Below are positions 17,455 through 63,482 of a stretch of DNA of 64,000 nt, in pieces. The stretch spans positions 17,298,001 through 17,362,000 of the forward strand of contig NC_043017.1 of the NCBI RefSeq assembly GCF_006345805.1. The letters are read 5' to 3'. The stretch's first letter is position 1. Each line of letters starts with the position of its first letter. The translations under genes and the position numbers were made by a program. Under the pieces are notes generated by a model. The model made no database searches. It was given only the letters and a program-made list of their open reading frames with translations, and had not been told where the DNA came from. This DNA is from Octopus sinensis (taxonomy: Eukaryota).

Positions 17455-17478
17455 TAATAAATATTATTATTATTATTA

Positions 17479-23362: not shown

Positions 23363-23464
23363 TTATATATATATATATAAGGATATATAGAGAGAGAGAG
23401 AGAGAGATGATAGAGTGAGAGAGAGAGAGGAGAGAGAGATATAAAATATTAAATATATATATAT

Positions 23465-25404: not shown

Positions 25405-25812
25405 CGTGGGACTGGCTGTGTGGTAAGTAGTTTGCTTACTAACCACATGGTTCTGGGTTCAGTCCCACTGCGTCGCACCTTGGGCAAGTGTCTTCTACTA
25501 TAGCCTCGGGCTGACTAGAGCCTTGTGAGTGGATTTGGTAGACGGAAACTGAAAGAAGCCAGTTGTATATATGTATATATATATATGTATGTATGTATGT
25601 GTGTATATGTTTGTGTGTCTGTGTTTGTCCTCCCAACATCGCTTGACAACCGATGCTGGTGTGTTTACGTCCCCGTTATCTAGCGGTTCGGCAAAAGAGA
25701 CAGATAGAATATGTACAGGGCTTACAAAAATAAGTCCTGCGGTCGATTTGCTCGACTAAGGGCAGTGATCCAGCATGGCTACAGACAAATGACTGAAACA
25801 AGTAAAAAAAAA
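25405..25812 (+). mobile_element. SINE family B, full length
   Basis: GGCTGTGTGGTAAG..GGGTTCAGTCCCACTGCGTCGCACCTTGGGCAAGTGTCTT..GACTGAAACAAGTAAAA. Confidence 0.92.
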
Positions 25813-26999: not shown

Positions 27000-27400
27000 T
27001 ATGATTCTGTTTAAAAATTTCAAATCCGTACACCCTCTGATAACTCACGGATGGTGATTCGACGATTTCCTCTCACAGCTGCAGGCACATCTGCGATGTT
27101 TTTCTCAGTTCTGCTGGTTGTGGGTCTCCCAGAACTTTTGTCACTATCGATATTTTCCCTGCTATCTTGGAAATGTCTAAACCACTCGTACACTTGTTTG
27201 CGACTCATAGAATCCTCCCCATACACTTTCTGCAACTTTGCGTTGGCCTCTGAGCAGTTACCGCCATGACAAGTTTCTGTGTCATGGTCAATGCAACGAT
27301 CACACACTACACACCTTCCTTCCAAGCACTGTTGTAAATAGCGGAATTGAGCCAGAACGTTAAAACTTAGTGTGCATGCACAGCAACGTTGAAGATCAAT
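27000..27400 (-). mobile_element. mariner transposase N-terminal HTH fragment
   Basis: EANAKLQKVYGEDSMSRKQVYEWFRHFQDSRENIDSDKSSGRPTTSRTEKNIADV..NRRITIRELSE. Confidence 0.9.
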
Positions 27401-27469
27401 CTTTGCCAAGCGGCTTCACTCTGTGTGCTTTAGCTTCGTTACTATGGCAACATTGCAGTACAAATACGT

Positions 27470-30274: not shown

Positions 30275-30625
30275 TTAGGAGTGGCTGTGTGGTAAGTAGC
30301 ATGCTTACCAACCATATGGTTCTGGGTTCAGCCCTGCTGCATGGCACATTGGCAAGTGTCGACCAAAGCATTGAGAGTGGATTTGGTAGACGGAAACTAA
30401 AAAGAAGCCCGTCATATATGTGTGTTTGTGTTTGTCCCGCCCACCGTCGCTTGACAACCGCTGTTGGTGTGTTTACGTCCCCGTAACTTAGCGTTTTGTC
30501 AAAAGAGACCGAAGGATAAGTACTAGGCTTACAAGGAATAAGTCCAGGGATCGATTTGTTCGACTAAAAAGCGGTGCCCCAGCATGGCCGCAGTCAAATG
30601 ACTGAAACATGTAAAAGACTGAAAG
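30275..30625 (+). mobile_element. SINE family B with internal deletion
   Basis: GGAGTGGCTGTGTGGTAAG..GGCACATTGGCAAGTGTC|GACCAAAGC..CAGCATGGCCGCAGTCAAATGACTGAAAC. Confidence 0.88.
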
Positions 30626-32643: not shown

Positions 32644-33064
32644 TTCTAACACAACATCCGCGTTCAAGTGGGGGTTAAATATTACCTCTCTATATACAGA
32701 TATGCATAAATATTTCTTTATATACATGAAAGAAAACAAATAAATATCGAGGAAGTTGTTAAAGCCATTACAGGTTCAATCCCGGGACAACTTACCGTGA
32801 CGTTTTTTTTTTTTTTTTCCCCGTAGTTGAATGGTTGTCGATCTTGATATACCATCCCTAACCTCGCTGTCTCAACATTTCTTCTTAAACGGTGACTCAG
32901 TACAGAACATCACCAATCACATCATCTTTTCCTTTCCCCTCGCTTCCATCTATTTCTCTCATTCTCTCTCTCCCACCTCTCTCTCTTCTATTCCCCTCTC
33001 TCTCTATTGCTCTCTCTCTCTGTTTTCCTTCATACTTCCTTGTTGTTGCAGTTGTAGTTGTAGA

Positions 33065-33120
33065 TGTTACTTAACTGCAGTAGTAGTAGTAGTAGTAGTA
33101 GCAACAACATCGTCATCAAC

Positions 33121-33152
<32 letters not shown>

Positions 33153-33259
33153 CAGTAGTAGTAGTAGTAGTAGTAGTAGTTGTTGTAGTAGTAGTAGTAG
33201 TTGTAGTGGTAGTAGTAGTAGTAGCAACAACATCGTCATCAACAGTAGTAGTAGTAGTT

Positions 33260-33303
<44 letters not shown>

Positions 33304-33370
33304 TGTAGTTGTAGTAGTAGTAGTAGTGGTGGTAGTAGTAGTAGTTGTAGTTGTAGTGGTAGTAGTAGCA
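33065..33370. repeat. (AGT)n compound repeat with a duplicated AGCAACAACATCGTCATCAAC interruption
   Basis: The interruption occurs at about 33100 and 33222. Confidence 0.95.
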
Positions 33371-33784
33371 GTCGGCCCTGTCGATATCTCAGCAGATTTG
33401 ATTCGGTCCATCAAGTTTCGCTTTTAATCAAAATATTGCAGACATTTTGAGGGGGGGAGCAAACGGAGTATAGGAGGAGAGGAGGGGCGGTGATTGAAGG
33501 GACAGGTTGGGAGAAGGTTGGTAAGAGGAGGAGGGGGATGAGGGAGGTCGGATGCAGTGAGGGAAATGACTTCGGAGTGATAGATATATGGTGAGAGATT
33601 AAGTGAGGGAGAGAGAGGGGGGTGTTGAATGAGGGAAGGTGAGAGAGGGTGAGAGATAAATAGAAAAAAAGGATGGTGAGTTTAACGGGAAGAAGCGAGC
33701 ATACATGTATATATATTTACAGATACACACTGTGTGTGTGTGTGTTGTGTGTATGTGTGTGTGTGTGTGTGTGTGCGTGCGTGT

Positions 33785-33955
33785 GTATGCGTGGCCGTGT
33801 GATAAGAAACTTGCTTCCTAACCACATGGTTCCGAGTTCAGTCCTATTGCATGACACCTTGGTCAAGTATCTTCTACTATAGTCTCGGGCTGACCAAAGC
33901 GTTGTGAGTGGATTTGGTATATAGAAACGGAAAGAAGCCCATCTGTGAGTGTGCG
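33785..33955 (+). mobile_element. SINE family B, 5' half
   Basis: GCGTGGCCGTGTGATAAG..GACACCTTGGTCAAGTATCTT..GAAAGAAGCCC. Confidence 0.85.
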
Positions 33956-33974
33956 TGTCTATGTATATACATAC

Positions 33975-34005
<31 letters not shown>

Positions 34006-34289: not shown

Positions 34290-35065
34290 AAATGTAAGCT
34301 AAAGTGCTCAGGGAAGTTTGTAAACGCAGTCGAAGTGCATACACAACTTAGGATTGGATTTCAAGCAGATTCACCTACGCGACTTACCATCTCTCGAATT
34401 GCAGATAAGTTTATAAAGCCGATGGCACTGTTCAGAATGTCTGCAAGAAACTTTCTTGAAGATTGCGGACATCAACGATCCCCACAAAACAAGAAAAAGT
34501 TACCAGACACGTATTGCTAGAGTTCGAGAAAATCTTTATGGTGAGCGAGTCGCGTAGAAGATGCGCAAACACCAACAAAGTTTGTTTGGAGTACGTTAGG
34601 CTCAATTAACTGCCACAGTTGCACCTTCTGGGGACCTGAGAATCTGCTTATTACGGAGAAACATAAAGCTAATTTACCTGATGTTACATCATGAAGTGGA
34701 TTATTAGCAAACGGATTAACTGGACCATTCTTTTTTTTTTTTTTCGATAATCTGATTGAGCCCCGTTTACTTGAATTTGCTGTGATAATCTGTTATATCA
34801 GACACTCAAGAGGTCTTTGAAGATGTGGGGTTTTACTCCCAGCAAGATGGGGCATTCCCATACTGCCATAGAAATGTGGGAGCCAACCTTGATGAGACTT
34901 TGCAAGAACGGGTGGATGAAGAGGTTCAATTGAATAGCTTCCACGTTCGCTGAAACTCTCTCTACCAGATTTTTGGGGAATACTTAAAAGATAGAATTTA
35001 CAGTACATAATTGGCAACAGTCGGTGAATTGAGGGCAGCCATTGAATGAGAATGTACAGAGAATA
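34290..35065 (+). mobile_element. rosa/DD41D-like Tc1/mariner transposase pseudogene
   Basis: N-terminal PTRLTISRIADKF.ADGTVQNV..; C-terminal QQDGAFPYCHRNVGANLDETL..RGSIE*LPRS..FWG.LKDRIY..ELRAAIE. Multiple frameshifts; the 41-residue spacing is inferred from the reconstructed motif. Confidence 0.7.
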
Positions 35066-35069
35066 CCAA

Positions 35070-35215
35070 ACAGGAGGAGGAGGAGGAGAAGAAGAAGAAG
35101 AAGAAGAAGAAGAAGAAGAAGAAGATGATGGTGATGGTGGTGGTGGTGGTGGTGGTGGTGAAGAAGATGATGATGATGAAGAAGATGATGATGATGAAGA
35201 TGATGATGATGATGG

Positions 35216-35259
<44 letters not shown>

Positions 35260-35429
35260 TTGGTGAAGAAAATGATGATGATTATGAAGAAGAAGAAGAT
35301 AATGATGATGGTGGTGGTGGTGGTGGTGAAGAAGAAGATGATGATGAAGAAGAAGATGATGATGATGATGAAGATGATGATGATGATGATGATGAAGAAG
35401 AAGAAGAAGAAGAAGAAGAAGAAGAAGAA

Positions 35430-35474
<45 letters not shown>

Positions 35475-35525
35475 AATGAAGAAGAAAACTTTCGTGGGGA
35501 GAGAGAGAGAGAAGAGATAGAGAGA
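35070..35525. repeat. (GAA)n/(GAT)n/(GGT)n compound trinucleotide repeat
   Basis: Direct inspection; source of the 238-aa acidic ORF. Confidence 0.95.
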
Positions 35526-36566
35526 GAAAAAAGAAAAGAGAGCAAAAACGTGGACGAGTCTTTGAACAGGAACTGTTGGTGCCAATACTTGGAAACCTTT
35601 TTTTCACGTACGGCGTTCGAAACATCACCATCAACAGCAGAAGCAGTAGGATCAACACCAGCAGAGGCTGTATTAAAAGGAGTAGTTGTTGCACAAGCGA
35701 GCAAAAGTTCTCCTCCTTCTAAAAACCACAACATACGAATTATCTTCCCTTTCAGTGAATAAATTAATTTAACGTTAATACAACATTCATAAATAACATA
35801 AAAAATAGGTTAAGTTAGCTGCACTAACTTAACCCATTCAGAATTTAGTTTTAATTCTGTTTTATTTTATCTTCATTTTATTTTTATTTCATTGTCGTTC
35901 TCTTTTCCCTTTTCTGATTCTATGAAACATGGTGGCTAGATGTCGCACAATGTCTGTTTATGTTGGCTGTTTGTAATTTTAAATGCATTATAGATTTTGT
36001 TCGTTATGCGTCGTCTTTTTTTTTAATGCTTTTTTATTAAAATTTCTATATTCCTGGCTTTGACTTTTGACTTCGGTTCTCTAAATCCCTCTGAGAATTT
36101 TGACAAAACAAGAACCGGCGGTGATGTATTATCGGGTTTTTCCAATTAAATTTCACACCACCATCACTTACCAATACAACCAGCAGCCTCTTTCCTCTAA
36201 AGCAAGTTCCTGAAAATGGTCGAATACCGAGTCAACACGACTGGAACTGGAATAAATATAAGACGAAAAAAAAAGAGCAATATTTGTTTTGGCGTTTGTA
36301 AGTTTACAGGAAATATTTTTCCTCTACAACTCATCGTACAGACACTCACACATACACTCATAATATGTATGTATGAGCGTGTGTAAGTATATATACATAC
36401 ATACATACACGCACATTACACACATACATATATACATGTATGATTGTGTATATATATATATATATAATATATATATATATAATATATATATATACATATA
36501 TATGCATGCACACACACACACGCACGCACGTACACACACGCAAACACGCACGCACACACACACACG

Positions 36567-37890: not shown

Positions 37891-38552
37891 GCAAGCAGAT
37901 ATTTTCTTTCCCAGATAAAGTTACATAACGATATGATGTTTGTAAATAAACGGTTTTTTCTTGAGAGATGTTTTAGATATAAAATGAATTTAGAACGACC
38001 ATAGACATGTACTTACTACAGTCTTTGTTGTTTTTTGTTGCCTTTGTTTTTGTTGTTGGTTTTGTTTTGTTGTTGGCGTCGCCGTCTTTGTTGTTGTTGA
38101 TAGTGGTTGTGTTGCTGTTGTTGATGTAGTAGTTATTGGCATCCTCGTTGTTGTTGCTTTGCTCCAAGGATCAGCTCCCCTGCATGACCTATGACCGAAT
38201 GTCTTTCTGCCATAAAGCGTCTTGCTCTTCTTCCACTTCCCCCAACCCCATCCAGACTATAAACACTTCCAGATATTCTGCATTCCATCTCTGGACTGCA
38301 TTATACTTATTATATCCTACTTTATAACTTGTACAAACTTCAGCATGTGGCTTGAAGAAGACTGACGCAGACATATATATGGAAGCCATAACCTACTCAT
38401 AATAAAAAAAGGAATAATTGTGGAATGTATCAAGGAAGACCGCAATAAAATATAAGTACAACAGACCTGATAATGATTTGGGATTGAGAAGAGAAACTGT
38501 GCACAGTTGTGGAAACTAGCTGCTCACCGGATGCGAACATAAAGCTGAAGAT

Positions 38553-38965
38553 TACTCTCTTTTTCTCTCTCTTTTACTTGTTTCAGTCATTTGACTGCGG
38601 CCATGCTGGAGCACCGCCTTTAGTCGATCAAATCGACCCCGGGACTTATTCTTTGTAAGCCCAGGACTTATTCTATCGGTCTCTTTTGCCGAACCGCTAA
38701 GTGACGGGGACGTAAACACACCAGCATCGGTTGTCAAGCAATGCGAGGAGGACAATCACAGACACACAAACACACACATACATATATATATATATATACA
38801 TATATACGACAGGCTTCTTTCAGTTTCCGTCTACCAAATCCACTCACAAGGCATTGGTCGGCCCGGGGCTATAGCAGAAGACACTTGCCCAAGATGCCAC
38901 GCAGTGGAACTGAACCCGGAACCATGTGGCTGGTTAGCAAGCTACTTACCACACAGCCACTCTTG
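38553..38965 (-). mobile_element. SINE family B, full length
   Basis: Near-consensus reverse copy from TTTTACTTGTTTCAGTCATTTG to CTTACCACACAGCCACTC. Confidence 0.93.
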
Positions 38966-39362
38966 CGCCTAATTAGTGAAAATTAGAGAACATTTATGCT
39001 GAACTATTGAGAAATCTGTAGTTACTCTACCCAGAAAACAAGTTCAAGTTTATACCTGTAATTATTGAGGCCCTGAGATATGTAACACATTGTCTGAATA
39101 CCAATCTTGAGAAATTAGGCTTCTCAAAACCAAAAAGGAGAAAGCTAATTCGAAGACTACAGATCCAATCCATCACTGGAATTGTAAATATCTGTAAAAC
39201 TTTCCAGAAGTTTATCATTTAAATATATACGAGCGTGTCTAGATATGCTACTATATGCATGAGAATACATACATAAAATATACAAACCTGCACATACATG
39301 CATACATACATACATACATACATTCATACATACATACATACAAACATACATACATACATACA

Positions 39363-39560: not shown

Positions 39561-39596
<36 letters not shown>

Positions 39597-39614
39597 TATA
39601 TATATATATATATA

Positions 39615-39775
39615 TACGACAACTTCAATACAACTTCTATCTAGGAAATCCACTCACAAGGGACTGGTCGGCCCGAAGCTAGAGTAGAAAATACTTGCTC
39701 AAGATACGGCGCAGTGGTACTGAACCGGAAACCACGTGGTTGAAGAGCGAGCTTCTGAACCACACAGCCATACCT
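39615..39775 (-). mobile_element. SINE family B 5' half, diverged
   Basis: AAATCCACTCACAAG..TACTTGCTCAAGATAC..CTGAACCGGAAACCACGTGG..CCACACAGCC. Confidence 0.75.
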
Positions 39776-39964
39776 TCACCTAATGCCATTTTTAACCTAC
39801 TTGCTATTAACTTTTTTATTTTCAACTCGAAAGCTGCCGCCATGCTGGAGCACTGCCGTTAATGCTGCCAAAAAGCAGTTTGGGCGGGAATAAATGAATA
39901 ATTAGAGGGAACTAATCATAATAGCTCTCCTCCTTGAGAATATTATAGAGTAGCACGGTTTCAC

Positions 39965-43350: not shown

Positions 43351-43364
43351 GTATTTATAAGCGC

Positions 43365-43560
43365 TGGAGTGGTTGTATGGTAAGAAACTAGGTTCCCAAC
43401 CACATGATTCCAGGTTCAGTCCCACTGCGTAGCACCTTGGGCAAGTGCCTTCTACTATAGCCTCGAGCAAACCAAATTCTTGTGAGTGAATTTGATAGAC
43501 GGAAACTGAAAGAAACCCGCCGTATATATATATGTGTGTGTATGTGTGTGTTTGTGTGTC
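43365..43560 (+). mobile_element. SINE family B, 5' half
   Basis: GGAGTGGTTGTATGGTAAG..GTAGCACCTTGGGCAAGTGCCTT..GAAAGAAACCCGCCG. Confidence 0.85.
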
Positions 43561-43843
43561 TGCGTTTATCCCCCCACCCACGTGTGTGTATGTGTAATAT
43601 TTTGATTATGTTGAAGTATTCTGGCCAAGAAAGCGATCATCTTCCGCAAAGTATTCTTCAAATGTAACCTATAAGCAGAACACTGAAAATATGCAAAGCT
43701 TTTCTAAAATCTATCATATAACTTTACACAGTAACTTATCGTCTAAATTCCTGGGTCGTTTGTTAAGTAGTCTTATTCCATTGTTAGAAACTAAACCTTT
43801 CTTTTTAAGACGAAAGAATTCAGGAATTAAAGCAGAAAAGAAG

Positions 43844-44471: not shown

Positions 44472-44571
44472 NNNNNNNNNNNNNNNNNNNNNNNNNNNNN
44501 NNNNNNNNNNNNNNNNNNNNNNNNNNNNNNNNNNNNNNNNNNNNNNNNNNNNNNNNNNNNNNNNNNNNNNN
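44472..44571. other. Assembly gap (100 N)
   Basis: Run of N. Confidence 1.
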
Positions 44572-45917: not shown

Positions 45918-45934
45918 ATATTTAAACAAGAAAT

Positions 45935-46325
45935 GAACACAAAATCGAAAAAGCACGGAAGAAAAAAATGTACGGTCAGTTTGCAAGATATGTGAACACG
46001 AAGACAGATACAGAGGACCGGTGGCTATGGATGACCCGGAGTGACATGAAGATAGAAACAGATGCACTCATATGCGCAGCTCAAAAACAACTGTTAAGGA
46101 CCAACTATGTGAAGTGCAGAATAGACAACACTACCGACAGCGACAAATGCAGAATGTGTGGTGAAAGGAGTGAAATGATATGGCATATCGTTAGCGAGTA
46201 TCCGAAATTGGCATAACGTGACAATGTGGTAAATATGATTCATTGGGAACTCTGTGGAAATCGCGCCCTACAAAGAGCAAAAAGGTGGTATGAGAAAACC
46301 CCAGAAGGACTCACCATGAATGAGA
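45935..46325 (+). mobile_element. R4/Dong-like non-LTR C-terminal CCHC region
   Basis: KKMYGQFARY..W.WM..SDMKIETDALICAAQKQ.LRTNYVK..IDN...DKCRMCGE..E.IWHIVSE.PKLA*RDNVVNMIHWELCG..AKRWYE. Confidence 0.85.
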
Positions 46326-47220: not shown

Positions 47221-47362
47221 TTTTTTTTTTTTCCTTGTTTTTGTATTATATATTATATATATATATATATATATATTTTTGTGTGTGTGTGTGTGTGTGT
47301 GTGCGCGCGCTGCGCGTGTGGTGTGTGTGTGTATGTATGTATGTATGTATGTATGTATGTAT

Positions 47363-47510
47363 ACGACGAGCTTCTTTCAGGTACCGTCTACCAAATCCAC
47401 CCACAAAGCCAGAGCAGGTCAAAGACTATAAAAGCAGACACTTGCCAAAGGTGCCAAACAGTGGTTCAGAATCATGTGGTTGGGAAGCAAACAGCTTACC
47501 ACACAGCCAC
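47363..47510 (-). mobile_element. SINE family B, 5' half
   Basis: ACGACGAGCTTCTTTCAG..CTACCAAATCCAC..GACACTTGCCAAAGGTGCC..CTTACCACACAGCCAC. Confidence 0.8.
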
Positions 47511-48274
47511 ACTTTGCACCTATACACCTATGCGCGTCCGCGCACACACATATACATATATATATAGTATACAAACATATCAAATATGTATGAGTGGGTA
47601 TTTATGTATGTGTGTACATATATATATATATATGTGTGTGTGACTCTGTGTATGTTTGTGTGTGTGCGTGTGCGAGGGCGCTTGTGTAGATAGGAACCGA
47701 AAAATGAAAGGTTAAAACAAAATTTACAAAAAGAAACTGGTGAGCAGTCACCATAATAATCAATGTTTAAATCTAATTAAAACTATAAAAATTGAAACTG
47801 AGAAACCAGTCTTTCCAGATTACAAAATCCTGAAGATTGTGATTATGGATTTATAATAAAGATTATATATCTTCGAAATATTGTAAACAAAATATAAATT
47901 TTGAAAAGGAAATCTGTAAATAAATTTAATCGCTTCTGTTGTATAAAAAATTATAAATTATTTTAAATATTATGAAAAATATTAAAAAAATTTAAAGAAA
48001 ATCTGCAAATATATTCCAAATTTGTATTTCCAAGGAAATGTTTTGCTGGGGTGATTTGTACTTTTGTACTTCGATTTTCGATTTATTTGGCTGCCTTTTG
48101 ATCTACTATATCAGTTTACACACACAAACTCACTCACACACACACACACACACATTCACTCACTCACTCACTCACACGCGCACACACACTCAGCACCCCC
48201 ACCCAAAAAAATCTAACAAACACCGACACAAGCACTAATGTTTACCATAACACTAACATAACAAGATAGATAGG

Positions 48275-48350
48275 AGTCACGCACTGGAACTGAACCCGGA
48301 ATCATGTGGTTGGGAAGCAAATTTTTTACCACACAGCCACTCCTGCGCCT
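48275..48350 (-). mobile_element. SINE family B head
   Basis: GGAACTGAACCCGGAATCATGTGGTTGGGAAGCAA..TACCACACAGCCACTCC. Confidence 0.8.
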
Positions 48351-48398
48351 AAACATATAATATATATATTACATATACATATGCATACATACATAAAC

Positions 48399-49733: not shown

Positions 49734-49785
<52 letters not shown>

Positions 49786-49788
<3 letters not shown>

Positions 49789-52700
49789 ATATAAATATAA
49801 AAAAAGGGGACCAAGAAGTGGATCGAACGACGAATCGGAACGAACCTGATGCGGGGCGCTGTCAGACAATAAGGAGATAAATAAAAATATATGCATACAT
49901 ACAAACATATATGTACGTACCTACATCTACATGTATATATACATGCATATATAAATAATTATACGGAAGTACAGGACATCACAATAAGAAGTAGAAACGG
50001 AAAAAGCCAAAAAACAAAAAACAAAAAAACAAGGAAAACGAAAAAAAAAAAAAACAAATACAGGACGAGCTACACAAGGACAAAACCCCCGTCATCAGCT
50101 GTCGCTAGAGGAGTCAGGCATGTTTCGAAGGCATAACAGAACACTAATCCAATAGGCCTTCCTGCGAGAGAATTAAAATAAATTCAAGCAGCGGGGCACA
50201 ATGAGTACGAACACAAACGTACAAAAACAAACACAAGAAGGAGACGAACGGAAAAGCCTTTTTTCTGGCATAGACAAACAATAAAACTGCAAAAATAAAA
50301 ATACAAGTACAAAAAGTACAATTAGTTACAAAACGAGAAAATAACAAGAATACTATACAGGAAATCAACCACACAAGGGGACGAACGAACGAAAAGAAGC
50401 CTTTTGCTGGCAAGGACGAAAGTGTAGTAGCAGCGCGTGGAGGCAGTCTTTTAAATAGTGGGAACCACGTGTAAAGGAATTTGTTTTATAGGCAAGGAAG
50501 AGGGAAGGAGGAGGGGGACACGCAGCGAAGAGAGAGGAGGAGGGGGAGGGAGAAAGATTGAAGAGGTTAAAGCAAAAGAAAGGGAGAGAGTACCGCATCT
50601 TCAATATAATAATATAAATATAAAAAAAGGGGACCAAGAAGTGGATCGAAACGACGAATCGGAACGAACCTGATGCGGGGCGCTGTCAGACAATAAGGAG
50701 ATAAATAAAAATATATGCATACATACAAACATATATGTACGTACTACATCTACATGTATATATACATGCATATATAATAATTATACGGAAGTACAGGACA
50801 TCACAATAAGACGTAGAAACGGAAAAAGCCAAAAAACAAAAAACAAGAAAACGGAAAACGAAAAACAAATACAGGACGAGCTACACAAGGACAAAACCCC
50901 CGTCATCAGCTGTCGCTAGAGGAGTCAGGCATGTTTCGAAGCATAACAGAACACTAATCCAATAGGCCTTCCTGCGAGAGAATTAAAATAAAATTTCAAG
51001 CAGCGGGGCACAATGAGTACGAACCAAACGTACAAAAACAAACACAAGAGGACGAACGGAAAAGCCTTTTTTCTGGCATAGACAAACAATAAAACTGCAA
51101 AAATAAAAATACAAGTACAAAAAGTACAATTAGTTACAAAACGAGAAAATAACAAGAATACTATACAGGAAATCAACCACACAAGGGGACGAACGAAGAA
51201 GCCTTTTGCTGGCAAGGACGAAAGTGTAGTAGCAGCGCGTGGAGGCAGTCTTTTAAATAGTGGGAACCACGTGTAAAGGAATTTGTTTTATAGGCAAGGA
51301 AGGAGAGGGAAGGAGGGGGACACGCAGCGAAGGAGAGGAGAGGAGAGGGGGAGGGAGAAAGATTGAAGAGGTTAAAGCAAAAAGGGAGAGAGTACCGCCA
51401 TCTTCAATATAATAATATAAATATAAAAAAAGGGGACCAAGAAGTGGATCGAAACGACGAATCGGAACGAACCTGATGCGGGGCGCTGTCAGACAATAAG
51501 GAGATAAATAAAAATATATGCATACATACAAACATATATGTACGTACCTACATCTACATGTATATATACATGCATATATAAATAATTATACGGAAGTACA
51601 GGACATCACAATAAGACGTAGAAACGGAAAAAAAAAAAAAAAAGCCAAAAAACAAAAAACAAGAAAACGGAAAACGAAAAACAAATACAGGACGAGCTAC
51701 ACAAGGACAAAACCCCCGTCATCAGCTGTCGCTAGAGGAGTCAGGCATGTTTCGAAGGCATAACAGAACACTAATCCAATAGGCTTCCTGCGCGAGAGAA
51801 ATAAAATAAAATTTCAAGCAGCGGGGCACAATGAGTACGAACACAAACGTACAAAAACAAACACAAGAGGACGAACGGAAAAGCCTTTTTTCTGGCATAG
51901 ACAAACAATAAAACTGCAAAAATAAAAATACAAGTACAAAAAGTACAATTAGTTACAAAACGAGAAAAAAACAAGAATAAATAACAGGAAATCAACCACA
52001 CAAGGACAGGGAACGAAAAGAAGCCTTTTGCTGGCAAGGACGAAGTGTAGTAGCAGCGCGTGGAGGCAGTCTTTTAAATAGTGGGAACCACGTGTAAAGG
52101 AATTTTGTTTTATAGGCAAGGAAGAGGGAAGGAGGAGGGGGACACGCAGCGAAGAGAGAGAGAGGAGGGGGAGGGAGAAAGATTGAAGAGGTTAAAGCAA
52201 AGGGAGAGAGAGTACCGCATCTTCAATATAATAATATAAATATAAAAAAAGGGGACCAAGAAGTGGATCGAAACGACGAATCGGAACGAACCTGATGCGG
52301 GGCGCTGTCAGACAATAAGGAGATAAATAAAAATATATGCATACATACAAACATATATGTACGTACCTACATCTACATGTATATATACATGCATATATAA
52401 ATAATTATACGGAAGTACAGGACATCACAATAAGACGTAGAAACGGAAAAAGCCAAAAAACAAAAAACAAGAAAACGGAAAACGAAAAACAAATACAGGA
52501 CGAGCTACACAAGGACAAAACCCCCGTCATCAGCTGTCGCTAGAGGAGTCAGGCATGTTCGAAGGCATAACAGAACACTAATCCAATAGGCCTTCCTGCG
52601 AGAGAATTAAAATAAAATTTCAAGCAGCGGGGCACAATGAGTACGAACACAAACGTACAAAAACAAACACAAGAGGACGAACGGAAAAGCCTTTTTTCTG

Positions 52701-55700
52701 GCATAGACAAACAATAAAACTGCAAAAATAAAAATACAAGTACAAAAAGTACAATTAGTTACAAAACGAGAAAATAACAAGAATACTATACAGGAAATCA
52801 ACCACACAAGGGGACGAACGAAGAAGCCTTTTGCTGGCAAGGACGAAAGTGTAGTAGCAGCGCGTGGAGGCAGTCTTTTAAATAGTGGGAACCACGTGTA
52901 AAGGAATTTTGTTTTATAGGCAAGGAAGAGGGAAGGAGGAGGGGGACACGCAGCGAAGAGAGAGGAGGAGGGGGAGGGAGAAAGATTGAAGAGGTTAAAG
53001 CAAAGGGAGAGAGTACCGCATCTTCAATATAATAATATAAATATAAAAAAAGGGGACCAAGAAGTGGATCGAAACGACGAATCGGAACGAACCTGATGCG
53101 GGGCGCTGTCAGACAATAAGGAGATAAATAAAAATATATGCATACATACAAACATATATGTACGTACCTACATCTACATGTATATATACATGCATATATA
53201 AATAATTATACGGAAGTACAGGACATCACAATAAGACGTAGAAACGGAAAAAGCCAAAAAAACAAAAAACAAGAAAACGGAAAACGAAAAACAAATACAG
53301 GACGAGCTACACAAGGACAAAACCCCCGTCATCAGCTGTCGCTAGAGGAGTCAGGCATGTTTCGAAGGCATAACAGAACACTAATCCAATAGGCCTTCCT
53401 GCGAGAGAATTAAAATAAAATTTCAAGCAGCGGGGCACAATGAGTACGAACACAAACGTACAAAAACAAACACAAGAGGACGAACGGAAAAGCCTTTTTT
53501 CTGGCATAGACAAACAATAAAACTGCAAAAATAAAAATACAAGTACAAAAAGTACAATTAGTTACAAAACGAGAAAATAACAAGAATACTATACAGGAAA
53601 TCAACCACACAAGGGGACGAACGAAGAAGCCTTTTGCTGGCAAGGACGAAAGTGTAGTAGCAGCGCGTGGAGGCAGTCTTTTAAATAGTGGGAACCACGT
53701 GTAAAGGAATTTTGTTTTATAGGCAAGGAAAGAGGAAGGAGGAGGGGGACACGCAGCGAAGAGAGAGGAGGAGGGGGAGGGAGAAAGATTGAAGAGGTTA
53801 AAGCAAAGGGAGAGAGTACCGCATCTTCAATATAAATATAAATATAAAAAAAGGGGACCAAGAAGTGGATCGAAACGACGAATCGGAACGAACCTGATGC
53901 GGGGCGCTGTCAGACAATAAGGAGATAAATAAAAATATATGCATACATACAAACATATATGTACGTACCTACATCTACATGTATATATACATGCATATAT
54001 AAATAATTATACGGAAGTACAGGACATCACAATAAGACGTAGAAACGGAAAAAGCAAAAAGCAAAAACACAAAAAAACAAGAAAACGGAAAACGAAAAAC
54101 AAATACAGGACGAGCTACACAAGGACAAAACCCCCGTCATCAGCTGTCGCTAGAGGAGTCAGGCATGTTTCGAAGGCATAACAGAACACTAATCCAATAG
54201 GCTTCCTGCGAGAGAATTAAAATAAAATTTCAAGCAGCGGGGCACAATGAGTACGAAACAAAAACGTACAAAAACAAACACAAGAGGACGAACGGAAAAG
54301 CCTTTTTTCTGGCATAGAAAAACAATAAAACTGCAAAAATAAAAATACAAGTACAAAAAGTACAATTAGTTACAAAACGAGAAAATAACAAGAATACTAT
54401 ACAGGAAATCAACCACACAAGGGGACGAACGAAGAAGCCTTTTGCTGGCAAGGACGAAAGTGTAGTAGCAGCGCGTGGAGGCAGTCTTTTAAATAGTGGG
54501 AACCACGTGTAAAGGAATTTTGTTTTATAGGCAAGGAAGAGGGAAGGAGGAGGGGGACACGCAGCGAAGAGAGAGGAGGAGGGGGAGGGAGAAAGATTGA
54601 GAGGTTAAAGAAAAGGAGAGAGTACCGCATCTTCAATATAATAATATAAATATAAAAAAAGGGGACCAAGAAGTGGATCGAAACGACGAATCGGAACGAA
54701 CCTGATGCGGGGCGCTGTCAGACAATAAGGAGATAAATAAAAATATATGCATACATACAAACATATATGTACGTACCTACATCTACATGTATATATACAT
54801 GCATATATAAATAATTATACGGAAGTACAGGACATCACAATAAGACGTAGAAACGGAAAAAGCCAAAAAACAAAAAACAAGAAAACGGAAAACGAAAAAC
54901 AAATACAGGACGAGCTACACAAGGACAAAACCCCCGTCATCAGCTGTCGCTAGAGGAGTCAGGCATGTTTCGAAGGCATAACAGAACACTAATCCATAGG
55001 CCTTCCTGCGAGAGAATTAAAATAAAATTTCAAGCAGCGGGGCACAATGAGTACGAACACAAACGTACAAAAACAAACACAAGAGGACGAACGGAAAAGC
55101 CTTTTTTCTGGCATAGACAAACAATAAAACTGCAAAAATAAAAAAATACAAGTAAAAAGTACAATTAGTTACAAAACGAAAATAAAAACAAGAATACTAT
55201 ACAGGAAATCAACCACACACAGGGGACGAACGAAGAAGCTTTTGCTGGCAAGGACGAAAGTGTAGTAGCAGCGCGTGGAGGCAGTCTTTTAAATAGTGGG
55301 AACCACGTGTAAAGGAATTTTGTTTTATAGGCAAGGAAGAGGGAAGGAGGAGGGGGACACGCAGCGAAGAGAGAGGAGGAGGGGGAGGGAGAAAGATTGA
55401 AGAGGTTAAAGCAAAGGGAGAGAGTACCGCATCTTCAATATAATAATATAAATATAAAAAAAGGGGACCAAGAAGTGGATCGAAACGACGAATCGGAACG
55501 AACCTGATGCGGGGCGCTGTCAGACAATAAGGAGATAAATAAAAATATATGCATACATACAAACATATATGTACGTACCTACATCTACATGTATATATAC
55601 ATGCATATATAAATAATTATACGGAAGTACAGGACATCACAATAAGACGTAGAAACGGAAAAAGCCAAAAAACAAAAAACAAGAAAACGGAAAACGAAAA

Positions 55701-58700
55701 ACAAATACAGGACGAGCTACACAAGGACAAAACCCCCGTCATCAGCTGTCGCTAGAGGAGTCAGGCATGTTTCGAAGGATAACAGAACACTAACCAAATA
55801 GGCCTTCCTGCATAGGCCGAATTAGAATTAAAATAAAATTTCAAGCAGGGGCACAATGAGTACGAACACAAACGTACAAAAACAAACACAAGAGGACGAA
55901 CGGAAAAGCCTTTTTTCTGGCATAGACAAACAATAAAACTGCAAAAATAAAAATACAAGTACAAAAAGTACAATTAGTTACAAAACGAGAAAATAACAAG
56001 AATACTATACAGGAATCAACCACACTTTCGTCCTTGCCAGCAAAAGGCTTCTTCGTTCGTCCCCTTGTGTGGTTGATTTCCTGTATAGTATTCTTGTTAT
56101 TTTCTCGTTTTGTAACTAATTGTACTTTTTGTACTTGTATTTTTATTTTTGCAGTTTTATTGTTTGTCTATGCCAGAAAAAAGGCTTTTCCGTTCGTCCT
56201 CTTGTGTTTGTTTTTGTACGTTTGTGTTCGTACTCATTGTGCCCCGCTGCTGTTGAAATTTTATTTTAATTCTCTCGCAGGAAGGCCTATTGGATTAGTG
56301 TTCTGTTATGCCTTCGAAACATGCCTGACTCCTCTAGCGACAGCTGATGACGGGGGTTTTGTCCTTGTGTAGCTCGTCCTGTATTGTTTTTCGTTTTCCG
56401 TTTTCTTGTTTTTGTGTTTTTTGGCTTTTTCCGTTTCTACGTCTTATTGTGATGTCCTGTACTTCCGTATAATTATTTATATATGCATGTATATATACAT
56501 GTAGATGTAGGTACGTACATATATGTTTGTATGTATGCATATATTTATTTATCTCCTTATTGTCTGACAGCGCCCCGCATCAGGTTCGTTCCGATTCGTC
56601 GTTTCGATCCACTTCTTGGTCCCCTTTTTTTATATTTATATTATTATATTGAAGATGCGGTACTCTCTCCCTTTGCTTTAACCTCTTCAATCTTTCTCCC
56701 TCCCCCTCCTCCTCTCTCTTCGCTGCGTGTCCCCCTCCTCCTTCCCTCTTCCTTGCCTATAAAACAAAATTCCTTTACACGTGGTTCCCACTATTAAAAG
56801 ACTGCCTCCACGCGCTTGCTACTACACTTTCGTCCTTGCCAGCAAAAGCTTCTTCGTTCGTCCCCTTGTGTGGTTGATTTCCTGTATAGTATTCTTGTTA
56901 TTTTCTCGTTTTGTAACTAATTGTACTTTTTGTACTTGTATTTTTTTATTTTTGCAGTTTTATTGTTTGTCTATGCCAGAAAAAAGGCTTTTCCGTTCGA
57001 CCTCTTGTGTTTGTTTTTGTACGTTTGTGTTCGTACTCATTGTGCCCCGCTGCTTGAAATTTTATTTTAATTCTCTCGCAGGAAGGCTATTGGATTAGTG
57101 TTCTGTTATGCCTTCGAAACATGCCTGACTCCTCTAGCGACAGCTGATGACGGGGGTTTTGTCCTTGTGTAGCTCGTCCTGTATTTGTTTTTCGTTTTCC
57201 GTTTTCTTGTTTTTTGTTTTTTGGCTTTTTCCGTTTCTACGTCTTATTGTGATGTCCTGTACTTCCGTATAATATTTATATATGCATGTATATATACATG
57301 TAGATGTAGGTACGTACATATATGTTTGTATGTATGCATATATTTTTATTTATCTCCTTATTGTCTGACAGCGCCCCGCATCAGGTTCGTTCCGATTCGT
57401 CGTTTCGATCCACTTCTTGGTCCCCTTTTTTTATATTTATATTATTATATTGAAGATGCGGTACTCTCTCCCTTTGCTTTAACCTCTTCAATCTTTCTCC
57501 CTCCCCCCCTCCTTCTCTTCGCTGCGTGTCCCCCTCCTCCTTCCCTCTTCTTGCCTATAAAACAAAATTCCTTTACACGTGGTTCCCACTATTTAAAAGA
57601 CTGCCTCCACGCGCTGCTACTACACTTTCGTCCTTGCCAGCAAAAGGCTTCTTCGTTCGTCCCCTTGTGTGGTTGATTTCCTGTATAGTATTCTTGTTAT
57701 TTTCTCGTTTTGTAACTAATTGTACTTTTTGTACTTGTATTTTTATTTTTGCAGTTTTATTGTTGGTCTATGCCAGAAAAAAAAGGCTTTTCCGTTCGTC
57801 CTCTTGTGTTTGTTTTTGTACGTTTGTGTTCGTACTCATTGTGCCCCGCTGCTTGAAATTTTATTTTAATTCTCTCGCAGGAAGGCCTATTGGATTAGTG
57901 TTCTGTTATGCCTTCGAAACATGCCTGACTCCTCTAGCGACAGCTGATGACGGGGGTTTTGTCCTTGTGTAGCCTGTCCTGTATTGTTTTTCGTTTTCCG
58001 TTTTCTTGTTTTTTGTTTTTTGGCTTTTTCCGTTTCTACGTCTTATTGTGATGTCCTGTACTTCCGTATAATTATTTATATATGCATGTATATATACATG
58101 TAGATGTAGGTACGTACATATATGTTTGTATGTAGCATATATTTTTATTTATCTCCTTATTGTCTGACAGCGCCCCGCATCAGGTTCGTTCCGATTCGTC
58201 GTTTCGATCCACTTCTTGGTCCCCTTTTTTTATATTTATATTATTATATTGAAGATGCGGTACTCTCTCCCTTGCTTTAACCTCTTCAATCTTTCTCCTC
58301 CCCCTCCTCCTCTCTCTTCGCTGCGTGTCCCCCTCCTCCTTCCCTCTTCTTGCCTATATAAAACAAAATTCCTTTACACGTGGTTCCCACTATTTAAAAG
58401 ACTGCCTCCACGCGCGCTGCTACTACACTTTCGTCCTTGCCAGCAAAAGGCTTCTTCGTTCGTCCCCTTGTGTGGTTGATTTCCTGTATAGTATTCTTGT
58501 TATTTTCTCGTTTTGTAACTAATTGTACTTTTTGTACTTGTATTTTTATTTTTGCAGTTTTATTGTTTGTCTATGCCAGAAAAAAGGCTTTTCCGTTCGT
58601 CCTCTTGTGTTTGTTTTTGTACGTTTGTGTTCGTACTCATTGTGCCCCGCTGCTTGAAATTTTATTTTAATTCTCTCGCAGGAAGGCCTATTGGATTAGT

Positions 58701-59757
58701 GTTCTGTTATGCCTTCGAAACATGCCTGACTCCTCTAGCGACAGCTGATGCGGGGGGGTTTTGTCCTTGTGTAGCTCGTCCTGTATTTGTTTTTCGTTTT
58801 CCGTTTTCTTGTTTTTTGTTTTTTGGCTTTTTCCGTTTCTACGTCTTATTGTGATGTCCTGTACTTCCGTATAATTATTTATATATGCATGTATATATAC
58901 ATGTAGATGTAGGTACGTACATATATGTTTGTATGTATGCATATTTTTTATTTATCTCCTTATTGTCTGACAGCGCCCCGCATCAGGTTCGTTCCGATTC
59001 GTCGTTTCGATCCACTTCTTGGTCCCCTTTTTTTATATTTATATTATTATATTGAAGATGCGGTACTCTCTCCCTTTGCTTTAACCTCTTCAATCTTTCT
59101 CCCCCCCTCCTCCTCTCTCTTCGCTGCGTGTCCCCCTCCTCCTTCCCTCTTCCTTGCCTATAAAACAAAATTCCTTTACACGTGGTTCCACTATTTAAAA
59201 GACTGCCTCCACGCGCGCTGCTACTACACTTTCGTCCTTGCCAGCAAAAGGCTTCTTCGTTCGTCCCCTTGTGTGGTTGATTTCCTGTATAGTATTCTTG
59301 TTATTTTCTCGTTTTGTAACTAATTGTACTTTTGTACATGTATTTTTATTTTTGCAGTTTTATTGTTTGTCTATGCCAGAAAAAAGGCTTTTCCGTTCGT
59401 CCTCTTGTGTTGTTTTTGTACGTTTGTGTTCGTACTCATTGTGCCCCGCTGCTTGAAATTTTATTTTAATTCTCTCGCAGGAAGGCCTATTGGATTAGTG
59501 TTCTGTTATGCCTTCGAAACATGCCTGACTCCTCTAGCGACAGCTGATGACGGGGTTTTGTCCTTGTGTAGCTCGTCCTGTATTTGTTTTTCGTTTTCCG
59601 TTTTCTTGTTTTTTGTTTTTTGGCTTTTTCCCGTTTCTACGTCTTATTGTGATGTCCTGTACTTCCGTATAATTATTTATATATGCATGTATATATACAT
59701 GTAGATGTAGGTACGTACATATATGTTTGTATGTATGCATATATTTTTATTTATCTC

Positions 59758-59760
<3 letters not shown>
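49786..59760. repeat. ~803-bp tandem satellite: about 7.7 forward units then about 4.6 inverted units, converging at 56022-56066
   Basis: Anchor GGGGACCAAGAAGTGG at 49806, 50629, 51432, 52251, 53052, 53853, 54661 and 55463; its reverse complement near 56610, 57410, 58210 and 59010. Both outer ends abut (TA)n. Confidence 0.97.
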
Positions 59761-59797
<37 letters not shown>

Positions 59798-59854
59798 CTA
59801 TATATATATAAATACGTGTGTGTGCCTGAATATGTATATGTGCTTGTGGAACCT

Positions 59855-59855: not shown

Positions 59856-59904
<49 letters not shown>

Positions 59905-59939
59905 CAGCAGCAGCAGTAGTAGTGGTGGTGGTGGTGGTG

Positions 59940-60000
<61 letters not shown>
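59855..60000. repeat. (TAG)n-(CAG)n-(TGG)n-(TAG)n compound repeat
   Basis: Direct inspection. Confidence 0.95.
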
Positions 60001-60001
<1 letters not shown>

Positions 60002-61135: not shown

Positions 61136-61225
61136 ATATATATATATATATATTAATATATATATATATAATATATATAGCAATAATAATTCTCTAAATG
61201 AGATAGACAGTGACTGCTCCATAAT

Positions 61226-61520
61226 ATAAGGATATTAGCCAACCGAATATGGCTAGGGACAGGGCATGGTGGTGGGGGTGTCACTGTTGCATTTAGCCCC
61301 AGGCGAACATCAACGTCAAATAGGCAATACACCTTGAAACCTAGGTCCGTGTGTGGTATCCGCTTCTTGGTGAATGATCTCCCTTTGCAAGATAGAGGAC
61401 GCCGTGATGACGTCAGGCCTATCTGGTGACGTTGATGTTCGCCTGGGGCGAAATGCAACAGTGACACCCCCACCACCCTGCCCTGTCCCTAGCCATATTC
61501 GGTTGGCTAATATCCCTTAT
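61226..61520. mobile_element. MITE with ~100-bp terminal inverted repeats, inserted in (TA)n
   Basis: ATAAGGATATTAGCCAACCGAATATGGCTAGGGACAGGG..CAACGTCA is mirrored almost perfectly at about 61416-61520. Confidence 0.9.
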
Positions 61521-61532
61521 ATTATATATATA

Positions 61533-62400: not shown

Positions 62401-63482
62401 AATTGTTTTAAGGAACACCAAACAAAAGTTGAATTTCCAAATCGATTTTCTTTTAACGACCAAAATAGAAAAACAAAATATTTGGGTGACTCAAAATTAT
62501 TGGTACATCTACAACTTTTGATGATGACTTTCGATCAATAGTGTATTCTTTATACTTAATAACTTTCTTCATTCCACTCGCGTAGTTTCCTGTAAACTTC
62601 AGCGACAGATCAGAAGGAATTGAAACCTGTTCTTCAATCGCATATTCTTCCAACTGCATCAAATTAGACGGCGTTCTTACTTTCACTCTTTTCTTTAGCT
62701 CATGCCATGAAGCTTCTATCGACTTTTAGTCAGGACTTTGAGCCGACCTTGGAAGTACATCTACCTTGTTTTCTTTCAAACAATTTTCGATTAAAAGTGA
62801 GGTAAACTTGAAATCAATTTCCAACTGTGGAAGGTCCAACTGTGTCCTAACCCCAGTTGTTTCGCCGATGACTTCAGGTTTTCATTCAAAACATCGAAAT
62901 AATTCTCTTTTTTCATAGTTCCTTCAATTCGAATTAATTTTCCTATGCCTTTAGCCAAAAACAGACTCTCTATTGAGAGTTCGAGTATCGTTAATCTTGA
63001 AACATGGACTCTGATAGCTGTCAAATTAGTTTTCGTCATCACAGTTGTTATTTTAGGGTCATTGTTGACCATTTTAATTAACATCTGCTCATCTTGTCCT
63101 AAAAAAGAACTTTCTGCCGCATCTACTCTCATTCATTATCAAACCGTTATCTCGGTGCTTCATAATTATGTTGCCAACAGTTGATCTAGCCATACTGAAA
63201 TTCTTAGATATTGCCTTATACCTATCTCCAGCAGCATAAGCATCAACAATTTGATAAAGGTGCTCTTGCACCTTTATCATGACGTCGATGATAGAATAGT
63301 CTGTTGCCCAAAAGAAGGTTGCAAATTGATTGTGTAAGTAATGTCACGTAGCCTTGACACACGTTATTCTAGAAGTTTCTGTATCTTTGAACTTTCTCAG
63401 GATGACGTAACCTCTCATATTCAGTGTTTATTGCAGCGCAATAATCAAATTGTCATGAAGGTGCCAATAATTTTGAACCGTG
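62400..63482 (-). mobile_element. Tc1 transposon remnant with internal deletion
   Basis: HTH IVDAYAAGDRYKAISKNFSMARSTVGNII..GRK; GKLIRIEGTMKKENY.DVL.ENL..SAKQLGLG..WTF; SAQSPD*KSIE..W.ELKKRV..PSNL.QLE. Inverted motifs TCAAAATTATTGGTAC (62491-62506) and GTGCCAATAATTTTGA (63461-63476). Confidence 0.88.

Follow-up and report, generated by a model that had tools for sequence, protein, structure and literature searches.

An 802-bp tandem satellite of Octopus sinensis with an inverted junction of fold-back anatomy

A stretch of 64,000 nt of the Octopus sinensis genome (GCF_006345805.1, NC_043017.1:17,298,001-17,362,000, forward strand; hereafter the window, within which all positions are counted) contains a block of tandem repeats whose units run in two orientations and meet tail-to-tail (Table 1). 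Both arms of the block give the same 802-nt consensus unit, and measured against it the left arm of 6240 nt holds 7.78 units and the right arm of 3739 nt holds 4.66, in agreement with the approximately 7.7 forward and 4.6 inverted units of about 803 bp counted in an earlier, sequence-only reading of this DNA. The left arm, whose top strand is the A-rich one, starts at unit position ~779 and stops at unit position ~555 (..CAACCACAC), while the outer end of the right arm lies at unit position ~64, leaving the two outer ends 87 nt out of unit phase. As the same reading had reported, each outer end adjoins a (TA)n tract at a different unit position (on the left, ..TATA is followed by ATAATATAAAT..; on the right, ..TTATCTCC is followed by TATA..), and the tract on the right gives way to unique sequence. 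The left and right flanks are unique and do not mirror one another, having only microsatellites in common. A Tc1 fragment was also recorded; its best matches are 76% identical, and the relatives named are an amphipod and a spider.

Table 1. Features of the satellite block and its surroundings (positions in the window)
Feature	Position	Strand	Description
Scaffold gap	44472..44571	.	100 N; 5.2 kb separate the array from the start of its contig at 44572
Left-flank compound microsatellite	49737..49788	.	(CA)14(TA)12, merging with the left end of the array
Left arm	49786..56025	+	24-nt unit tail, 7 full units (F1-F7) and 560-nt partial F8
Reference monomer F4	52254..53054	+	801 nt, 1 difference from the 802-nt consensus
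ACAC	56022..56025	.	4-nt microhomology common to left-arm end and right-arm start; pairs with GTGT
Spacer	56026..56066	-	41 nt, single copy (fold-back loop); unit sequence, not adapter
GTGT	56067..56070	.	Inverted partner of ACAC; proposed snap-back priming point
Right arm	56022..59760	-	600-nt partial R1, 3 full units (R2-R4) and 736-nt partial R5
Right-flank microsatellite	59759..59814	.	(TA)13(CA)3..(TA)5

The units are regularly spaced and nearly identical. Unit anchors fall at 49809, 50632, 51435, 52254, 53055, 53856, 54664 and 55466 on the forward strand (spacing 801-823) and at 56604, 57405, 58204 and 59007 on the reverse strand (spacing 799-803). Across these 12 anchors, 799-823 nt apart, identity to the consensus is 95.4-99.9% per unit; repeat families and inverted matches of 200-349 nt are 99-100% identical, and a 21-nt unit motif matches 21 times where no match is expected. 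The reference monomer contains an imperfect TA/CA-rich palindrome (52333-52398), an A-rich (CAAAAA)-like stretch, a GA-rich polypurine tract and two copies of the motif GGACGAACGnAAnAGCCTTTT (52675 and 52812). Base composition differs sharply between the two strands (A 44%, T 17%), and the unit includes microsatellite sequence of the host type. Head-to-tail copies of such high identity are characteristic of satellite DNA. No further copies of the unit, degenerate ones included, were found in the window outside the array.

Differences between units amount to 104 events, almost all of them private and with transversions exceeding transitions. The sequence-only reading had ascribed them mostly to homopolymer indels; the noise is indeed dominated by indels (86 events, 83%), and the emphasis on homopolymers was slightly overstated, with 47 of the 86 falling there. 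Even F8 and R1, which adjoin the junction and are expected to be identical copies, are separated by 12 difference events. Private, indel-dominated differences of this kind represent consensus noise on identical units, pointing to youth or homogenisation of the array and to poor polishing; with a base accuracy of only about 96-99.9% per unit, the region is backed by few long reads or by poorly polished ones. Among variants compared across the junction, two of eight shared events fall in a mirror pair (F7/R2), which is suggestive only (permutation P=0.11).

The unit has neither coding capacity nor a structured-RNA gene. Open frames in a trimer of the consensus are only 70-138 aa long and driven by composition, the long ones lying on the A-poor strand, and the 138-aa frame is without a homologue among 5.8 billion proteins. 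The whole window yielded no RNA family in Rfam at gathering thresholds, and no tRNA or tmRNA genes were found; when two units were searched on both strands at E<=5, the only Rfam matches were sub-threshold, miRNA-like ones to the TA/CA-rich hairpin. Hammerhead, HDV-like, twister and other ribozyme families were absent from that same permissive search, leading us to reject a retrozyme or other ribozyme-bearing repeat, and a Helitron or rolling-circle transposon array was set aside because 5'-TC...CTRR-3' termini are absent at both ends. Three invariant unit 23-31-mers had no match in viral_contigs or metagenome_contigs, blastn of the unit against plasmids and phages gave none, five unit 20-mers were absent from the literature searched, and the 802-bp repeat is absent from ENA contigs L001 and L002.

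These results bear on one of the two origins put forward in the sequence-only reading, the insertion of a hairpin cDNA. According to this model, rolling-circle reverse transcription of a circular RNA of ~800 nt, with self-primed synthesis of the second strand, would have yielded a hairpin concatemer that was then inserted into a TA tract. Reverse transcriptases can self-prime by snap-back, the strand asymmetry of the unit is strong, and identical units are what the copying of one circle would produce. The absence of a ribozyme or RNA family, of an ORF or reverse transcriptase relative, and of poly(A) and a target-site duplication at the ends nevertheless argues against it, as does the host-type microsatellite sequence inside the unit. 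Furthermore, a self-primed hairpin cDNA is an ordinary looped duplex, which would have to be unfolded and replicated before it formed a palindrome. The proposal is not upheld, and we consider a retro-derived concatemer hardly credible.

The block switches orientation only once between 49786 and 59760, the reverse units directly adjoining the right flank. As read, the junction is ..CAACC-ACAC-41 nt-GTGT-GGTTG.., and its novel adjacency places CAACCACAC next to TTTCGTCC (also given as ..AATCAACCACAC followed by TTTCGTCCTT..). The ACAC said to be shared by the two arms is read directly there, and the spacer occurs, as had been described, in one orientation only: it is present once, in the orientation of the right arm and contiguous with that arm, and is the reverse complement of the ACAC-to-GTGT segment found in every forward unit. 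The snap-back, self-priming anatomy proposed for this site thus matches exactly, as a 4-bp stem and a 41-nt loop. Inverted copies around a single-copy spacer that is contiguous with one arm, together with a short inverted microhomology at the spacer edges (ACAC/GTGT) in excess of chance, constitute the anatomy of a fold-back inversion. No special DNA structure was found at the junction (MFE -4.8 kcal/mol, z=+1.35). Two independent insertions in opposite orientations were rejected, a remnant of a TA tract being absent from the junction.

The statistics of the junction favour a real inversion by intramolecular snap-back. If inverted joins were made in the unit at random, only 0.35% of them would carry at least 4 nt of microhomology (P=0.0035); microhomology of the ACAC/GTGT kind occurs at ~20% of unit positions. 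This rarity, together with the 4-bp stem and the 41-nt loop contiguous with one arm, argues for a real inversion, and in unit phase no more than 45 nt separate the joined arm ends (P=0.11 if the ends are independent), which points to an intramolecular event. Alternatively, two linear array fragments could have been ligated tail-to-tail by NHEJ or MMEJ, before or during integration, with no snap-back synthesis. The unequal arms and unrelated outer ends would accord with such a ligation, and inverted joins of this sort are seen in transgene-type concatemers; concatemers of exogenous or extrachromosomal DNA often include a few head-to-head or tail-to-tail joins that carry short microhomology. Against end joining stand the proximity of the joined ends in unit phase and the fact that they are related exactly as the stem and loop of a fold-back, with a microhomology that would seldom arise by chance, and we therefore regard it as very unlikely.

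On balance we lean towards a genuine genomic structure, the product of one snap-back-primed inversion in vivo within a young satellite block at a fragile TA tract. A DNA 3' end terminating at ..CGAAAGTGT inside a unit would have become single-stranded and folded back, allowing its GTGT to anneal to ACAC 41 nt upstream. Extension of the annealed 3' end, with its own strand as template, and replication of the resulting hairpin would then generate a palindrome centred on the single-copy 41-nt loop. The inequality of the arms and their offset in phase imply that the fold-back was followed by a further break or join. We infer the occurrence in vivo, the order of these events and the route by which the block reached its present site. 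Along the route we prefer, a broken fragment consisting of the palindromic concatemer, linear or extrachromosomal, would have been captured at a break in the fragile TA tract; alternatively, the fold-back may have occurred in situ and been followed by a dicentric or a template switch, after which the inverted arm, itself broken, would have healed by joining a TA tract. Fold-back repair of a breakage-fusion-bridge-like kind was the other origin suggested in the sequence-only reading. The fold-back anatomy of that suggestion is supported; a breakage-fusion-bridge history is compatible with the block, because the breakage of a dicentric is expected to leave the spacer in either orientation and the inverted arm shortened and sealed to foreign sequence.

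The main competing explanation is a sequencing or assembly artefact, in which the satellite is real and the switch in orientation is not genomic. Such an error could arise from a chimera formed by template switching in vitro (for example in MDA/WGA, or by snap-back and fill-in), with which an assembler or gap-filler then bridged ambiguous, identical repeats, possibly joining two different satellite loci that each end in a TA tract. Tandem arrays are classic sites of misassembly. Here the gap 5.2 kb to the left raises the risk, placing the array near a contig end, and the consensus across the array is of low quality with private, indel-rich noise; identical units make overlaps inside the array ambiguous and copy numbers unreliable, and TA tracts are abundant. 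In addition, fold-back chimeras are documented in both ONT and PacBio data, palindromic chimeras from WGA are common in long reads, and template switching by polymerases in vitro yields the same signature of microhomology plus loop. The junction was matched by no second copy, allele or related genome in the searches made, an observation that counts against a real inversion.

Several features of the block are nonetheless difficult to reconcile with an artefact. The unmirrored flanks lower the risk, and with unequal arms that are out of phase several independent errors would be required; the same three features favour a real inversion. The centre contains no adapter, and the 41-nt loop rules out both simple duplex read-through and a missed SMRTbell adapter. 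Building the contig needs reverse units physically at the right flank and forward units at the left flank, and an in-vitro fold-back on the kilobase scale would require a strand-displacing polymerase, that is, an amplified library. The simple form of a long-read fold-back or missed-adapter artefact was accordingly rejected, since mirrored flanks, equal arms and a central adapter or exact axis are all absent, and so was read-through from template to complement, the axis of symmetry falling inside the non-palindromic loop. An artefact by the more elaborate routes is a distinct possibility, to which we give lesser weight than to the in-vivo inversion.

The setting of the array in TA repeats adds to the case for a real inversion, since both outer ends lie in TA tracts, which make up only 2.8% of the surrounding sequence, and the two flanks, if joined, combine into one continuous compound microsatellite, (CA)n(TA)~25(CA)n. 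No less plausibly than a breakage-fusion-bridge history, the flanks may represent a single TA microsatellite split in two, which would mark an insertion. An argument from one empty site is weak, given how common TA tracts are in this DNA, with 38 perfect (TA)>=10 tracts counted over 64 kb. We judge it somewhat probable, as a joint statement with the in-vivo fold-back inversion, that the block is a tandem, non-coding satellite that is lineage-restricted, young and essentially homogeneous, set in a (TA)n microsatellite. A more specific and rather unlikely extension is that the block is a fossil of the satellite's birth. Host DNA of 802 bp would have been multiplied outside the chromosome, through rolling-circle replication or linear replication with hairpin caps, and a double-strand break in fragile (TA)n would then have taken up the product, a broken palindromic concatemer. 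Extrachromosomal amplification would explain both the identical units and the snap-back junction.

If real, the block represents a clean natural case of a microhomology-primed fold-back inversion in a tandem array, with its junction kept to the base. It would link three subjects usually studied apart, namely the fragility of TA tracts, repair by fold-back and the founding of new satellite loci, and its one novel junction k-mer would provide a testable marker for population and species surveys. Were the satellite's birth truly recorded here, the block would offer direct sequence evidence from an animal germline for the long-postulated extrachromosomal seeding of satellites, with the inversion junction as its signature. 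If the junction is instead artefactual, it serves as a useful warning that a fold-back chimera can persist in a scaffolded assembly, in this case at a repeat close to the end of a contig. The class of mechanism is already well described, and the gain is incremental either way.

Among known systems, the programmed rDNA palindrome of Tetrahymena is formed after developmental breakage by intrastrand annealing of a 42-bp inverted repeat. It resembles the octopus array in the annealing of a short inverted repeat near a break and in its short non-palindromic centre, but the array has just 4 nt of chance microhomology in place of a dedicated 42-bp inverted repeat. Artefactual long reads share with the array adjacent forward and reverse copies in a noisy long-read context. 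Fold-back artefact reads are near-perfect palindromes broken at mid-read (PMC12870357), and with WGA palindromes occur in 12-50% of reads (10.1101/173872). Such reads mirror everything about their midpoint, whereas the array has unique flanks, unequal arms that are out of phase and a centre formed by a loop of unit sequence.

Small, very homogeneous euchromatic blocks at new sites are also known from Rsp-like and 1.688 satellites of Drosophila, for which seeding by eccDNA and MMEJ has been described (10.1101/846238). As in the array, the monomers at either end of these blocks are truncated, and their junctions fall in sequence that is repetitive and microhomologous (10.1101/846238). They differ in being direct arrays inside another satellite, with no inverted junction described (10.1101/846238), while the octopus block is set in a TA microsatellite. 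The signature of eccDNA, in which the first and last truncated monomers add up to one unit, is inapplicable to a palindromic insert. ODIRA, which gives an inverted triplication whose two inversion junctions surround an origin, was rejected; the array has one junction and no forward copy past the reverse arm.

The closest counterparts are the fold-back inversions of yeast and human cells (PMC7467729, PMC10622511, PMC3907307), which share with the array inverted copies, a single-copy spacer contiguous with one arm and a short inverted microhomology at the spacer edge, 4 bp in this case. The array departs from them in lying inside a tandem satellite, where the template is repetitive, and in being interstitial, with unique sequence on both sides and arms of only 3.7-6.2 kb. 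In human inverted duplications the inverted microhomology measures 2-8 bp and the spacer, likewise single-copy, 0.8-70 kb as against 41 nt in the array (PMC3907307). In yeast, the stems of fold-back inversions are as short as 4 bp, the median loop in repair-proficient cells is 35.5 nt, and all fold-back inversions of such cells undergo secondary rearrangements (PMC7467729). The 41-nt loop of the array falls within this repair-proficient range, and its unequal arms point to a secondary rearrangement here as well. The match of the junction to the short stems and loops of yeast and to the inverted microhomology of human cells thus favours a real inversion.

The two arms of the satellite array, whose 802-bp units run forward on the left and in reverse on the right, comprise 6240 nt (7.78 units) and 3739 nt (4.66 units), respectively. 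A unit anchor has eight occurrences on the + strand, from 49809 to 55466 at intervals of 801-823, and four on the - strand, from 56604 to 59007 at intervals of 799-803, and a repeat finder returned the same periodicity together with inverted matches of 200-349 nt at 99-100% identity. At 56 kb the AT skew turns abruptly from +0.47 to -0.44, because the 802-nt consensus unit is A-rich (A 44%, G 23%, T 17%, C 16%) and its orientation switches there. Direct reading of the top strand across the junction gives ..CAGGAATCAACC-ACAC-TTTCGTCCTTGCCAGCAAAAGGCTTCTTCGTTCGTCCCCTT-GTGT-GGTTGATTTCCTG..., in which TTTCGTCCTTGCCAGCAAAAGGCTTCTTCGTTCGTCCCCTT is the 41 nt of the spacer, and agrees to the base with the junction described in the sequence-only reading. 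Every forward unit carries the identical 41 nt between ACAC and GTGT in the opposite orientation to the junction copy, and thus the tail-to-tail contact of the arms falls at unit positions ~555 and ~600. The inverted microhomology common to the arms is 4 nt, and the 41-nt loop that it encloses is single-copy, non-palindromic and contiguous with the right arm; the sole novel adjacency is that of CAACCACAC with TTTCG. A partner of at least 4 nt lies within 100 nt of about 20% of unit positions, and the local fold at the junction is not unusually stable (z=+1.35); the site is therefore opportunistic rather than specialised.

This anatomy matches that of fold-back inversions in yeast and humans. 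In yeast, a resected break exposes a 3' tail, which pairs with an inverted sequence close by and serves as primer for synthesis; stems of as little as 4 bp occur, short stems being used if the break lies within ~50 bp, the median loop in MRE11/SAE2-proficient cells is 35.5 nt, and all events undergo secondary rearrangement (PMC7467729). In human inverted duplications the inverted microhomology spans 2-8 bp and the spacer is single-copy (PMC3907307). The short microhomology and single-copy loop found here fit such inversions and support the fold-back repair that had been proposed from the sequence. A 3' end at ..CGAAAGTGT would have paired with the ACAC that lies 41 nt upstream and been extended along its own strand, and replication of the hairpin would have yielded the palindrome. 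The orientation of the spacer with respect to the longer arm is no guide to which arm is original, because a hairpin becomes symmetric on replication and a second break may leave either half.

Template-to-complement read-through would give a perfect axis or the 41 nt in both orientations, whereas the axis here falls in a single-copy loop; a missed hairpin adapter would leave adapter at the centre, which here is unit sequence. A fold-back read extending the contig would mirror everything, whereas the flanks are not mirrored (the left, 5.2 kb, and the right, 4.2 kb, have only microsatellites in common) and the arms differ in length and phase, their outer ends being offset by 87 nt. Artefactual fold-back reads are near-perfect palindromes broken at mid-read (PMC12870357). 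A blunt ligation chimera was also rejected, since microhomology of at least 4 nt is expected at 0.35% of random inverted joins in the 802-bp unit and two independent ends have only a small chance of lying within 45 nt of each other in unit phase (P=0.11). With these simple artefacts excluded, a hairpin-looped DNA strand, arising from annealing and polymerisation, is required. It is possible, if rather doubtful, that a chimeric molecule made in vitro bridged two array ends, even from two loci: palindromes of just this kind arise through strand-displacing amplification and occur in 12-50% of long reads (10.1101/173872), the array region is poorly polished, identical units make overlaps within it ambiguous, and the array lies 5-15 kb from the contig end at 44572, 5.2 kb to its left, which borders a 100-N scaffold gap. 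We hold, with modest confidence, that the inversion is a real in-vivo fold-back.

The units differ from their consensus by 104 events, of which 86 are indels, 47 of them in homopolymers, and 18 are substitutions (Tv:Ts = 12:6); only 8 are common to any two units, the two arms have identical consensus sequences, and base accuracy is ~96-99.9% per unit. These differences are consensus noise of error-prone long reads, because they are star-like, private, indel-rich and biased towards transversions, and tandem arrays do not diverge in this way. The true units are therefore essentially identical, and the array is young or homogenised. F8 and R1, the partial units that flank the junction and are expected to be copies of each other, show 12 differing events and none in common, and the mirror partners F7 and R2 have two common events at mirror-symmetric distances from the centre (permutation P=0.11). 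Beside the junction, F8 has a 9-nt templated-looking insertion (ATAGGCC/GAATTA duplicated) and a GC deletion, and R1 an AC insertion at the corresponding unit position (~370-374); these changes may represent a local error hotspot or real heterogeneity near the junction.

The unit is non-coding. Its long ORFs are confined to the A-poor strand, which has few stop codons, and the longest has no homologue among 5.8 billion proteins. Rfam returned no family at threshold over the whole window, and when two units were searched on both strands at permissive E-values the only matches, miRNA-like and sub-threshold, fell on an imperfect TA/CA-rich palindrome of ~65 nt. This palindrome was rejected as a miRNA and is a low-complexity hairpin, scoring 39 bits against mir-297/mir-466-type models with gathering scores of 85-100. 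A tRNA search returned none, and neither Helitron termini nor ribozymes were found in the unit. Searches of viral and metagenome contig collections with its invariant 23-31-mers gave no hit, blastn against plasmids and phages gave no match, and the sequence was not found printed in the literature. The rest of the window contains nothing like the unit, save that consensus positions 70-156 resemble the genome's ubiquitous TA/CA compound microsatellites. Because it also holds an A-rich (CAAAAA)-like stretch and a GA-rich polypurine tract, the unit has the look of amplified intergenic DNA of the host and not of a virus or transposon.

The window is eukaryotic and very microsatellite-rich, perfect SSR runs making up ~9% of non-array sequence. 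Its very long trinucleotide arrays, one of them directly beside the satellite, yield elsewhere homopolymeric pseudo-ORFs of 130-240 aa in several frames and strands. Amid transposon debris lies a C-terminal Tc1-type DDE_3 transposase fragment (151-aa open frame), with microsatellites in place of its N-terminal half; its best database relatives are 76% identical, the named ones being from the amphipod crustacean Trinorchestia longiramus and the spider Trichonephila clavipes. These relatives were taken to place the host among the arthropods, probably the crustaceans. Four further open frames, judged by eye from translations, look like a mariner-type N-terminal HTH, two non-LTR retrotransposon C-terminal tails and a Tc1-like HTH fragment. 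A SINE- or MITE-like interspersed repeat of ~400 bp (at least 12 copies, 74-90% identity) often adjoins microsatellites and gives rise to spurious ORFs in whose translations 'LRPCWS..' and '..GLNPEPCGW' recur. The small inverted repeat in the right flank may represent either a MITE or a local hairpin.

Coordinates of the array and of other features in the window
Feature	Position	Strand	Remarks
Left arm	49786-56025	+	F1-F8
Right arm	56022-59760	-	R1-R5
Junction ACAC	56022-56025
Junction loop	56026-56066
Junction GTGT	56067-56070
F8 changes	55810-55830
R1 change	56255-56262
Unit palindrome	52333-52398		and corresponding site of every unit
Scaffold gap	44472-44571
Trinucleotide array	59856-60001		(GTA)n/(GGT)n
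Trinucleotide arrays	32900-33430, 34980-35760
Right-flank inverted repeat	61221-61318, 61427-61525		arms ~99 nt, 97% complementary, ~108 nt apart
Tc1-type fragment	9675-10127	-
Transposon-like open frame	27023-27415	-
Transposon-like open frame	11435-11692	+
Transposon-like open frame	45926-46213	+
Transposon-like open frame	63092-63343	-
~400-bp repeat, reference copy	38551-38972
~400-bp repeat, copies	25410-25815, 8478-8776, 15185-15622, 30279-30618, 43358-43574, 33791-33984	-
~400-bp repeat, further copies	22262-22486, 39566-39784, 1474-1706, 47340-47522, 23446-23544, 48278-48352
~240-nt repeat	3291-3531 and 1740-1976 versus 17215-17455		inverted orientation, 90-93% identity; dispersed element copies

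The left end of the array joins (CA)14(TA)12 at unit position ~779, within the unit's own AT-rich tail, and this boundary may therefore be off by a few bases; on the right, the array stops against (TA)13(CA)3 at unit position ~64, where microhomology of 1-3 nt is possible. With the block taken out, the flanks would give one (CA)n(TA)~25(CA)n microsatellite. TA tracts constitute only 2.8% of the sequence around the array, so the placement of its ends is not random; such tracts are also frequent, with 38 perfect tracts of at least 10 TA repeats in the 64-kb window, so the argument from a single empty site has limited weight. A pre-existing palindromic concatemer, broken linear or extrachromosomal, may have been captured at a break in a TA tract; alternatively, a direct array may have broken in situ and folded back, its broken inverted arm then being healed onto a TA tract. 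We lean towards capture, because the two flanks together restore a single microsatellite and the arrival of the unit at this site requires an insertion in either case. The breakage-fusion-bridge-like event of the sequence-only reading fits in situ breakage and is possible, though unproven, whereas its other proposal, a hairpin cDNA, finds no RNA or RT signature and alone would not yield a palindromic duplex. The event belongs to a well-known class, of which its setting, within a homogeneous satellite and in a TA tract, provides a neat but incremental example. ODIRA proper, an inverted triplication with two inversion junctions, does not describe an array with only one. Capture of a concatemer is comparable to the hairpin-capped inverted linears of ODIRA and to the seeding of satellites via eccDNA and MMEJ in Drosophila (10.1101/846238).
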